A stretch of 64,000 nucleotides of DNA, from NCBI GenBank assembly GCA_002269645.1, contig NIVC01000665.1, positions 248,001 to 312,000 on the forward strand, written 5' to 3'. Source of the DNA: Macrostomum lignano (Eukaryota). Below the pieces are notes generated by a model, which saw only the letters and a program-made list of their open reading frames with translations, searched no databases and had not been told where the DNA came from. The translations under genes were made by a program, and so were the position numbers. Below, piece after piece: positions 57,814 to 60,800 of this stretch (its first letter is position 1; the number at the start of each line of letters is the position of its first letter).

Positions 57814-60800
57814 ATGTCCACAACGGCCTCCAGCCGTCACCTGCTGAATGAGTTCTGCGGCTACACCACCGCCCACGGTCTCGGCAGGTTCAGCGAGCAG
57901 GCGGGCACGCTGGGCAAAGCCCTGTGGCTCTGCTTCCTGCTGGGCACCTACGGCGGGTTCACCTACCACATGTACACCCTGGGCCTGCAGTTCGCCAGCG
58001 TGCCGCTCTCCACCAGCCTGTCCACCTCGCTGCCGTTCGAGTTTCCCGACGTGTACTTCTGTCCGACCGACACCGTGACCATGAGCCGGCTGACTTATCA
58101 AGCAGACAGCAACTCGGTGATCAGCAACAGCAGGTGCAATTCGGCCTGCAAGATGAGGGACCTGCTGTTCAACATCCTGTCTGAGAGTGCCGAAGGCGCC
58201 GGAGTTTTGCAGTTTGAACTGTCGGCAGCCGCGGTCGCGCTGGGTCACGTGATGTCCCAGGCTGAGGCCAACATCACGGCAGCGCTGCAGTACATGGGAC
58301 AGGGTGAGCCGATCGGGCAGCTCCTGCTCCTTTCTCGCTCTCGCCTTCCCGCTCTTCATCTTCAGGTATCAAATGCATCTTTACCGAAATGCACCCACTT
58401 CTACCCAACTCTTTGTCTCTACTCACAAATCTCTCACTCTCACCCTCCCCTCTCGCTTCTCCTTATTTCGTCGCGCTCCTCTCCCTCTTTCTTCTCCTTC
58501 TCCCTCTCCCTCTCCCTCTCCCTCTCCCTCTCCCTCTCCCTCCCCCTCTCTCTCCCTCTACCTCTCCCTCTCCCTCTCCCTCTCTCTCTCCCTCTCCCTC
58601 TCTCTCTCCATCTCCCTCTCCCTCTCCCTCTCCCTCTCCCTCTCCCTCTTCCTCTCCCTCTCCTCCCTCTCTCCGTTCTCCCCTTTCCCCTTTCTCCCCA
58701 CTCTTCCTCTCCCTCGCCCGTCTCCCTCTTCCTTTTTGCATTGTGTTTGAGAGATTTTCTTGACTTCAAACCAGTGCAAAGTCACCCAAGTCAAACACGA
58801 GCTATCAAGGCCATTGGCCACTGCCCGCCACCTCCAGCGACATCAACGTGCCGGACCAGCCAGTCGGGTGAGGAGTACTCAGGCAGCCTGGCCTCGGTGC
58901 CCATCTACTCGGGCGAGACAGTCGGCCTGTCAGCCAGCTTGGAGCCCTTCGTGAGCTACAGCGACTGCATTGGCTGGAATGAGGCCGCCAGGGAGCTGCA
59001 GGCGGCCGGACTGCGCCAGCTGGCTGGCAGAATCCTCGCCGCTGGCTTCCCCGACAGCCACCGAAGCTGCAGGCAGCCGCCCGGCCTGCCGCTCACCGCC
59101 TTCCACGACAATGCGACGCGTGAGTTGTTGGCTGCTCAATGGATTCGATTGGCTGCTAGGGCGTGGTGAGATTAGTTGCTGAGGTAGTGAGATTAGTTGC
59201 CAAGGCAGTGAGATTAGTTGCCAAGGTGGTGAGATTAGTTGCCAAGGTGGTGAGATTAGTTGCCAAGGTGGTGAGATTAGTTGCTGAGGTTAGTGAGGTT
59301 AGTTGCTAAGGCAGTGAGATTAGTTGCTGAGGTTAGTGAGATTAGTTGCCAAGGTGGTGAGATTAGTTGCTGAGGTAGTGAGATTAGTTGCTGAGGTAGT
59401 GAGATTAGTTGCTGAGGTGGTGAGATTAGTTGCTGAGGTGGTGAGATTAGTTGCTAAGGTAGTGAGATTAGTTTCTGAGGTAGTGAGATTAGTTGCTGAG
59501 GTAGTGAGATTAGTTGCTGAGGTGGTGAGATTAGTTGCCAAGGCAGTGAGATTAGTTGCTATGGTGTTGAGAACAAGGACAGCGACCGCCCTACTCAAAC
59601 CGGGGTCGAACGACCGAACTGCTTAACTCTCTCAACTTCAGGCCCGCTACTCGCCTCAGTTGGCTGCCTGCCGTTCAACAGCAGCGGGGCGAACTTCACG
59701 GAGCTCTGCCTGAACGATGAGCTCTACGATTTGACTCAGGAAATTTGCGCCCACTGTTGCTATGGACGCGGCTACAGCCATATGGGACTCATTGGCAACC
59801 GGTGCCATTGCTCACCTGGCCTGGTCACTGGTGGCACCTGGTCAGCCTCCTCGGCCTTTGGGTGCGTCAGCGAGTGCCCGGGAAATTATTCCCAGATCTG
59901 CGGCTCCGTCCGCGACCAGCTGATGAGCGTCTTCAGGCTTGCGGATCCCAGTGAGCGGATGAGTATCTGTCTGTCTGTCTGTCTGTCTGTCTGTCTGTCT
60001 GTCTGTCTGTCTGTCTGTCTGTCTGTCTGTCTGTCTGTCTGTCTGTCTCTGTCTGTCTGTCTGTCTGTCTGTCTGTCTGTCTGTCTCTGTCTGTCTGTCT
60101 CTGTCTGTCTGTCTGTCTGTCTGTCTGTCTGTCTGTCTGTCTGTCTGTCTGTCTGTCTCTGTCTGTCTGTCTCTGTCTGTCTGTCTGTCTGTCTGTCTGT
60201 CTGTCTGTCTGTCTGTCTGTCTGTCTGTCTGTCTGTCTGTCTGTCTGTCTGTCTGTCTGTCTGTCTGTCTGTCTGTCTGTCTGTCTGTCTGTCTGTCTGT
60301 CTGTCTGTCTGTCTGTCTGTCTGTCTGTCTGTCTGTCTGTCTGTCTGTCTGTCTGTCTGTCTGTCTGTCTGTCTGTCTGTCTGTCTGTCTGTCTGTCTGT
60401 CTGTCTGTCTGTCTGTCTGTATTAGCGCCGCAGATGCTTTGCCTAAAAACGCCCCTGGACCGGCGGTTTCAGACAGGAAGCCTCTGTACCTGCCGTACCG
60501 GTCATCAGTGAGCAGCTTCAACAGCGGTCCTTACTGCTTCTATCGAGGCGACGGCGGGAGGCTGGCGGCCACGTACTGCAATGTTCCTTACTGCCGTGAG
60601 TTCCGCCACTGTCTTTAAGTCATATTTAGTCACTCAGTCAGCTTCATGATCTGTTTCACAACAGCTTCATTGAACTCTCTACTAAAACGAACCCTCAGCC
60701 CTGTCAGCCAGGTACGACTGCTTGAACGCAGACGTGGACGGCGTCTTCAGCAGCCGGCAGCTGCAGCGGTACACCGGATTTAAGCGGGAGTCCAGACGCC

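Follow-up and report, generated by a model that had tools for sequence, protein, structure and literature searches.

Can a folded extracellular domain be carried as a single exon inside a loop of another, disulfide-bonded module? The question is raised by a locus of the flatworm Macrostomum lignano, which lies in a stretch of 64,000 nucleotides (nt) of assembly GCA_002269645.1 (contig NIVC01000665.1, positions 248,001 to 312,000, forward strand; hereafter the window, numbered from its first letter). Here, three consecutive exons were originally predicted to encode a kringle with a WSC domain nested between its third and fourth cysteines. We found that these exons belong to a gene that, as judged from its predicted protein, is a DEG/ENaC ion channel subunit gene with the layout ASC[K1[WSC] K2]ASC, where ASC is the channel domain, K1 the interrupted module, and K2 a second kringle. 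Thus, the original prediction gains a wider context, with the nested unit lying inside a DEG/ENaC ectodomain and another kringle downstream of it. The explanation that we favor, with a probability of about 0.75, is that a diverged kringle K1 with the WSC domain in its Cys3–Cys4 loop and a diverged kringle K2 form a cassette in the variable stretch after the first transmembrane segment (TM1), which we take to be the finger region of the channel.

The gene model was built by hand from the sequence and consists of nine exons and a tentative tenth on the forward strand, with a predicted protein of 740 amino acids (aa). All nine exons have cag acceptors and GTGAG or GTAAC donors, and a single open frame runs through them. 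The three exons of the original prediction proved real: 58838–59119, 59642–59950, and 60434–60595 (282, 309, and 162 nt) have canonical AG and GTGAG borders, are in phase 1 on both sides, and share the same open frame. They correspond to exons 2 to 4 of the model. Exon 2 (58838–59119) encodes the N-terminal half of K1, with Cys1, a G..Y.G motif, Cys2-x2-W, and Cys3-R-x-P; exon 3 (59642–59950) encodes the entire WSC domain, with 10 cysteines; exon 4 encodes the C-terminal half of K1, with Cys4 in GPYCF, Cys5 in YC, and Cys6 in VPYC. The start of exon 4 had to be revised. Another in-frame acceptor, tttcag/AC, is found at 60473, 39 nt inside the exon that begins at 60434, and its use drops exactly 13 residues and leaves an exon of 123 nt (60473–60595, phase 1-1), as long as that of the closest paralog. 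Because the 13 extra residues are missing in every M. lignano paralog of the gene (described below), we prefer 60473; exon 4 probably starts there rather than at 60434, with both acceptors being usable. A further pair of in-frame acceptors, only 9 nt apart, is present at 60699/60708 of exon 5, where the paralog alignment supports 60699. The use of the alternative 3′ splice sites would gain or lose either the 13 residues beside the WSC domain or 3 residues between K1 and K2.

As had been claimed, exon 3 is a full WSC domain, a module of the sugar-binding type. Its translation alone matched Pfam WSC (PF01822) with 30.6 bits (E 4e-7) over profile positions 2–81 of 82, above the gathering score of 27.8 bits; within the 740-aa model, the score was 27.4 bits, slightly under that threshold. 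The corresponding gathering scores are 34.3 bits for Kringle (PF00051) and 23.6 bits for ASC (PF00858). In the long paralog P0003, the yeast Wsc1 structure 7pz2 was matched by sequence (E 2e-6) exactly over the residues of the WSC exon (aa 264–364). For structural comparison, AlphaFold2 models were built from segments of P0003, with the window exons entered as fragment rows. Foldseek matched the WSC part of these models to Wsc1 7pz2 (E 5e-4 with a TMt of 0.62; TMt 0.57–0.63 across the models) and also to Kremen1. The predicted secondary structure, which is that of the paralog model and not of the window protein, has five strands and one helix, like the solved WSC domain, in which the sheet is ordered β1-β5-β3-β4-β2 (PMC5014086).

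The proposal that the flanks of this exon form a kringle held for the cysteine order, the motifs, and the profile matches but failed at the Pfam threshold. Exon 2 carries the pattern C-x5-G-x2-Y-x-G, C-x2-W, and C-R-x-P, and the insertion is followed by G-P-Y-C-F and Y-C-N-V-P-Y-C; across both halves, six cysteines stand in kringle order, with flanking motifs that correspond to those of kringles (C..G..Y.G, C..W, CRxP, PWC, and YCxIxxC). The canonical spacing and contiguity are lost between Cys3 and Cys4, where K1 has ~37 linker residues in addition to the 102-residue WSC domain. By comparison, this loop measures 10–12 residues in nine kringles of plasminogen and HGF and 31–35 residues in K2.

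Profile comparisons provided indirect evidence for a kringle origin. K1 without its WSC domain aligned to K2 in hhalign with E 3e-5 and a probability of 73% over 91 columns, with Cys2–Cys6 in register. In agreement with the original prediction, the WSC exon lies between the exons that encode Cys3 and Cys4 of this kringle-derived module. Against a reference alignment of plasminogen kringles 1–5 and HGF kringles 1–4, taken from PDB alignments, K1 gave E 1.5e-4 across Cys4–6. Column shuffling (150 shuffles, mean score ~11 ± 2.5) never reached the real values: 34.5 versus a maximum of 24.2 for K1 against K2, 28.5 versus 21.2 for K1 against real kringles, and 27.3 versus 19.6 for K2 against real kringles. 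When the K1 profile was compared with the PDB, it matched solely plasminogen kringle 2 (E 1.3, split into three collinear segments) and the kringle of neurotrypsin (E 1.5–2.4), and the PDB matches of its C-terminal half were solely kringles aligned at Cys4–6. The single sequence of exons 2 and 4 returned one spurious PDB match only (phmmer).

The cysteine counts point in the same direction. The N-terminal half of K1, the WSC domain, the C-terminal half of K1, and K2 contain 3, 10, 3, and 6 cysteines, respectively, in the window gene and in the paralogs P0003, P0004, and P0005, and Cys3, Cys42, and Cys76 of the K1 module are invariant in six paralogs. With three cysteines in each half of K1 in an extracellular protein, disulfide bonding between the halves, bridging the WSC domain, would be expected. 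Together, these data make it quite likely that K1 is a kringle-derived module with a WSC domain in its Cys3–Cys4 loop. Because K1 remains below the Pfam Kringle threshold, its label rests on the profiles and on the neighboring K2.

K2 is encoded by exon 5 (60699–60890; 192 nt, phase 1-1), with Cys1–Cys2 (YDC ... RYTG ... C-x-x-W); exon 6 (60984–61104; 121 nt, phase 1-2), with Cys3 (NHSYCRP) and the start of a long Cys3–Cys4 loop; and exon 7 (61224–61315; 92 nt, phase 2-1), with Cys4–6 (SPVC ... NTCELDTC). A profile of nine K2 sequences matched tPA kringle 2 (E 7.6e-5) and ROR1 (E 9e-4) in the PDB, as well as HGF and prothrombin; kringle proteins accounted for 34 of its 36 matches, and the matched parts form three collinear segments (Y.G....T.sG..C..W, nfCR, and PvC...C.i..C). 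Seven of the nine K2 sequences had a match to Pfam Kringle, although under the gathering score (best E 2.6e-4), and the loop-trimmed K2 gave 19.3 bits (E 0.0014). Similarly, hhalign of K2 against the plasminogen and HGF kringles gave E 2.4e-4 over the Y.G...C..W part. On these profile comparisons, K2 is an uninterrupted kringle with a long, domain-free Cys3–Cys4 loop. Matches to Maelstrom, which were seen with a profile of four K2 sequences, were absent with the nine-sequence profile and were judged to be due to chance.

Several results weigh against a kringle identity of K1. Untrimmed, neither exons 2 and 4 nor exons 2, 3, and 4 had a match to Pfam Kringle at E ≤ 10, and only two of six untrimmed K1 sequences matched it at E ≤ 1 (best E 0.05). 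After loop trimming, K1 of the window gene reached 17.3 bits (E 0.006; profile 20–79), under the gathering score of 34.3 bits, a threshold that K1 never attained. The structural models of P0003 were of moderate confidence, with a mean predicted local distance difference test score (pLDDT) of 68 and a predicted template modeling score (pTM) of 0.61 for K1[WSC] (240 aa), and values of 62 and 0.43, respectively, for K1[WSC]K2 (385 aa). Foldseek searches with both models retrieved no isolated kringle at a meaningful E for either K1 or K2; the top match of the K1[WSC] model was the Kremen1 ectodomain (E 1.8e-3, 246 aligned columns), with a TM of only 0.25–0.30. Moreover, the Cys2–Cys3 stretch of K1 was predicted to be helical, with the highest confidence in both models, whereas canonical kringles are non-helical in this stretch.

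These observations, and the fact that the PDB matches of K1 lie at E 1.3–2.4, would fit an arrangement of ASC, WSC, and K2 alone, in which the WSC exon is flanked by cysteine-rich segments of the linker or finger that are specific to the lineage and whose motifs are due to chance or convergence. We consider this unlikely, since the alignment of K1 with K2 keeps five cysteines in register and lies above all 150 shuffles, K1 aligns to authentic kringles at Cys4–6, no family other than the kringle emerged when K1 was searched against Pfam and the PDB, and the 3 + 3 parity of cysteines is kept in all complete members of the family.

The identity of the host protein was apparent from both ends of the cassette. 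Exon 1 (57814–58303) starts with ATG and encodes a DEG/ENaC N terminus with the HG motif (TAHG), the hydrophobic TM1, the sequence FPDVYFCP, and the start of the finger region; its 3′ border at 58303 is in phase 1, with the donor G/GTGAGC. Pfam ASC matched the open reading frame of exon 1 with 47 bits over profile positions 1–90 of 455, and the full window model with 69.7 bits (gathering score 23.6 bits). Downstream of K2, exon 8 (62026–62387; 362 nt) returns to the DEG/ENaC ectodomain (HCRFAGRPC ... LGACHWFN; ASC profile 153–208, E 0.0037), as does exon 9 (63107–63315; 209 nt, phase 0-2), which aligns with the paralogs. The tentative exon 10 (63643–63741; 99 nt, phase 2-2) has a weak tblastn match to the tail of P0003 (E 0.35), in the expected order and on the expected strand. 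Because the gene continues past the window end after exon 9 or 10, the second transmembrane segment (TM2) lies outside the window. In P0003 and P0004, TM2 (GGALGLWSGISVLT) is present together with the G-I-S filter; these paralogs thus look like intact channels, and the family shares the ASC domain, HG motif, TM1, and, in these paralogs, TM2 with FaNaC, ASIC, and ENaC. Among solved chains, P0003 matched FaNaC (E 8e-12) and also ASIC5, ENaC, and PPK. Its residues 10–97 align to FaNaC 66–155 and its residues 580–613 to FaNaC 207–240, the latter being the segment to which exon 8 corresponds through P0003. This alignment places a cassette of ~390 residues between positions ~155 and ~207 of FaNaC, in the variable stretch that comes once TM1 and the initial strands have been passed.

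The same layout was found in a family of M. lignano proteins. The closest database proteins of the window gene, which has no identical counterpart there, are all from this species: the fragments P0001 and P0002 and the long proteins P0003 (BOX15_Mlig007204g1; 1052 aa, 42% identity, 98% coverage), P0004 (Mlig006056g1; 1049 aa, 34% identity), and P0005 (Mlig034226g1; partial, 802 aa, 34% identity), with a coverage of 97–98% for the long homologs. P0009 and P0153, which also have this module order, correspond to Mlig013355g1 and Mlig006398g1, respectively. The long paralogs carry precomputed Pfam ASC and WSC annotations, with the order ASC, WSC, ASC at their loci, and in the alignment P0003–P0005 share the module order of the window gene, namely ASC N terminus with TM1, K1 Cys1–3, WSC, K1 Cys4–6, K2, and the remainder of ASC with TM2, and the same cysteine pattern. 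In total, six complete M. lignano paralogs have the complete layout, at 29–44% identity, and the C-terminal half of K1 measures 42–43 residues in all eight members that carry one. Thus, nested units do exist elsewhere in the genome, as the original prediction had suggested might be worth looking for, but a tblastn search found no second copy of K1[WSC] within the window. The public names of these proteins are merely "hypothetical protein", "WSC domain-containing", or "Amiloride-sensitive sodium channel", and their kringle parts and nesting are unannotated.

Outside this family, the cassette did not recur among the matches listed. A profile search of 1.84 billion representative sequences gave 3,935 matches, most of which were multi-WSC proteins aligned at the WSC domain only. 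Among the 150 matches listed, the N-terminal half of K1 was aligned only in P0003, P0005, P0007, P0009, and the fragment P0002, while P0008, P0011, P0052, and P0053 were aligned at the WSC domain, the C-terminal half of K1, or K2; M. lignano is the source of P0007–P0009, P0011, P0052, and P0053. As far as this library shows, the cassette is therefore lineage-specific, with at least eight M. lignano paralog clusters.

The exons of P0003 and P0004 were located in the same assembly (loci L001 and L002, respectively), and the intron positions of both agree with those of the window gene. In the order P0003, P0004, and window gene, the exon of the N-terminal half of K1 measures 303 (phase 1-1), 303, and 282 nt; the WSC exon 300 (phase 1-1), 292 (phase 1 to 2), and 309 nt; and the exon of the C-terminal half 123 (phase 1-1), 122 (phase 2 to 1), and 123 nt (assuming the start at 60473). 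The three K2 exons measure 195, 165, and 192 nt; 142, 142, and 121 nt; and 95, 134, and 92 nt, and the two downstream ASC exons 365, 359, and 362 nt and 206, 200, and 209 nt, the latter exon in the same phases. Since the layout is common to six paralogs at 29–44% identity and the introns match in two mapped loci, the nesting is not a recent shuffle. The annotation of this assembly (NIVC01) is a genome-guided RNA-seq transcriptome (PMC5730564), which implies that paralog transcripts with the WSC exon between the two halves of K1 exist. Thus, the WSC nesting is old and apparently constitutive.

Two observations on individual family members may be added. The second K2 exon of P0003 is interrupted by a 6.7-kb insertion (L001 6063–12788), at whose ends lie the inverted repeats AACTACGTATCGCGCC...GGCGCGATACGTAGTT and a duplicated GTAC. 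In the annotated model, this DNA-transposon-like insertion is excised at borders other than GT/AG, suggesting that a copy lacking it gave rise to the transcript; this fits an annotation derived from RNA-seq. In the window gene, the similarity of exon 2 to P0001 and P0002 is mosaic: its C-terminal half (...FHDNAT) is near-identical, and divergence is much greater in its N-terminal half and at the end of exon 1. Gene conversion between paralogs may account for this pattern.

The evidence from the paralogs also bears on the proposal that skipping of the WSC exon would restore an in-frame, uninterrupted kringle. If this exon were a regulated cassette exon, skipped transcripts would give a WSC-less, long-loop K1 and thereby switch extracellular binding. 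The arithmetic holds for the window gene, in which the exon is symmetric (309 nt, phase 1-1), and for P0003, and the ~37-residue loop of a skipped K1 would resemble that of K2 (31–35 residues). However, the symmetry is limited to two of the three genes examined: in P0004, skipping would shift the frame, so skipping is not a conserved property. In addition, the WSC domain is present in all database models that cover the region, among which no WSC-less member was found, and all ten WSC cysteines are retained in the window gene, P0003, P0004, and P0005. Even in the window gene, what skipping would leave is not a restored kringle, as the loop would remain at ~37 residues in place of the canonical 10–12. 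Regulated skipping is thus unsupported, and we regard it as improbable. It is more improbable still that the window model is artefactual, or that the locus is a pseudogene copy in decay, so that the nesting has no meaning at the protein level, since, despite a highly duplicated genome (PMC5730564), mosaic closest fragments, the lack of an exact protein counterpart in databases, and satellites in all large introns, the nine exons share an open frame and have good splice sites, every conserved cysteine of K1, the WSC domain, and K2 is intact, and exon sizes and phases agree with those of transcribed paralogs.

How could a diverged kringle with a WSC domain in its loop have arisen and folded? We propose that, ahead of the family expansion, a phase-1-1 WSC exon entered the intron in the loop of a K2-like kringle whose loop was already long and that the inserted domain has since become constitutive. 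K2, whose loop is long and holds an intron at the corresponding position, resembles the state before insertion. In the folded protein, the three cysteines of the N-terminal half would pair with the three of the C-terminal half (1-6, 2-4, and 3-5) and thus close K1 around the WSC domain. The termini of the WSC domain should be close together, because in the structure of Kremen1 the first strand of this domain lies next to the last.

The position of the cassette is suggestive of a role. The finger region controls gating in ENaC, ASIC, and degenerins; it harbors the protease-sensitive insert of ENaC and the extra cysteine-rich domains of degenerins, and elsewhere in the family ligands, proteases, or mechanical tethers act on it. 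A built-in cassette at this site would most likely modulate gating through the binding of glycan or matrix or through tethering to them. More specifically, it might be a built-in extracellular receptor or tether for a glycan, mucus, matrix, or protein ligand, with binding or mechanical pull coupled directly to the finger and thereby to gating, an idea that we put forward tentatively and at less than even odds. A point against such a function is that three M. lignano DEG/ENaCs, not placed relative to the cassette-bearing subfamily, gave no currents in oocytes in response to the peptides tested (PMC9234716). If the receptor or tether role is true, it would represent a new mode of gating or anchoring for DEG/ENaC channels, acquired via a doubly nested exon insertion (WSC in kringle in ASC). 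The presence of these modules in the stretch after TM1 suggests a testable coupling to glycan, matrix, or ligand in a tractable transgenic flatworm.

Among known proteins, the closest parallel to the combination is provided by Kremen1/2, which also have a kringle and a WSC domain in one extracellular protein, tightly packed and with a joint ligand-binding face (PMC5014086). As the original prediction correctly stated, the two domains are tandem in Kremen and not nested: the kringle (C32–C114) is followed by the WSC domain (C122–C198), a CUB domain, and a single-pass anchor (PMC5014086). By contrast, in the window gene, the WSC domain is nested in the Cys3–Cys4 loop, CUB has no match, and the host is an ion channel. 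A specific origin of the cassette from Kremen found no sequence support, as the match of the WSC domain to yeast Wsc1 had a better score than its match to Kremen.

Nested modules as such have precedents in the laminin L4 domain, which lies inside an LE module, and in integrin I-domains; there, too, the host domain closes around its insert, although the module types differ. To our knowledge, no kringle has been described as the host of an inserted domain. C. elegans degenerins carry extra extracellular cysteine-rich or EGF modules, and the kringle and WSC domains would extend the short list of known accessory domains in the ectodomains of DEG/ENaC channels. In a full-text literature search, we found no paper linking DEG/ENaC channels to kringle or WSC modules, and the comparative FaNaC study that included three M. 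lignano DEG/ENaCs does not mention these domains (PMC9234716). Thus, while the proteins themselves are public, the K1[WSC] K2 layout in a DEG/ENaC channel is previously undescribed. For protein evolution, it offers a case in which an intron-delimited folded module sits in the loop of a small disulfide-bonded module and the resulting cassette sits inside a third domain, an arrangement that was retained through the expansion of a gene family; it changes no general principle.

The introns of the channel gene are rich in repeats. Each of the large ones (58304–58837, 59120–59641, 59951–60472, and 62388–63106) contains a different tandem repeat: (CCTCTC)n at 58478–58733; a 21-bp unit repeated 18.7 times at 59166–59560, which makes up most of intron 2 (59120–59641, 522 nt); (TCTG)116 at 59966–60420, which fills nearly all of intron 3 (59951–60472, or to 60433 with the upstream acceptor); and (TAATC)78 at 62692–63083. 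Introns 1 to 3 measure 534, 522, and 522 nt, each divisible by 3. As intron 3 is without an in-frame stop, its retention would insert an in-frame (CLSV)n stretch.

Tandem repeats are also abundant elsewhere in the window. Minisatellites with units of ~20 bp are unusually frequent (49346–55217, 35509–37801, 20365–22697, and others). The largest array spans 5.9 kb, with about 298 copies of the unit CCAGTTGATCCCAGTAGCGC, another has 116 copies, and such arrays give rise to artefactual open reading frames of up to 1,954 aa. On the reverse strand, 3385–5880, perhaps extending to 7635, is the pol region of a long terminal repeat (LTR) retrotransposon (RVT_1, RT_RNaseH, and integrase core), in which the frame is broken between the domains, as they lie in separate open reading frames. 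The forward strand also carries pieces of genes for a leucine-rich-repeat protein (658–1692), a TTC39/Iml2-type TPR protein (23922–24857), an acyl-CoA dehydrogenase (31465–32388), and a ZIC-type zinc-finger protein (39266–40177). Last, a dispersed repeat of ~200 bp is present upstream of the channel gene (55459–55677) and in its intron 7 (61711–61911). The same repeat occurs upstream of the P0003 gene (L001 2472–2651) at 66–69% identity, and dispersed repeats are common to the window and other M. lignano loci at 66–86% identity.

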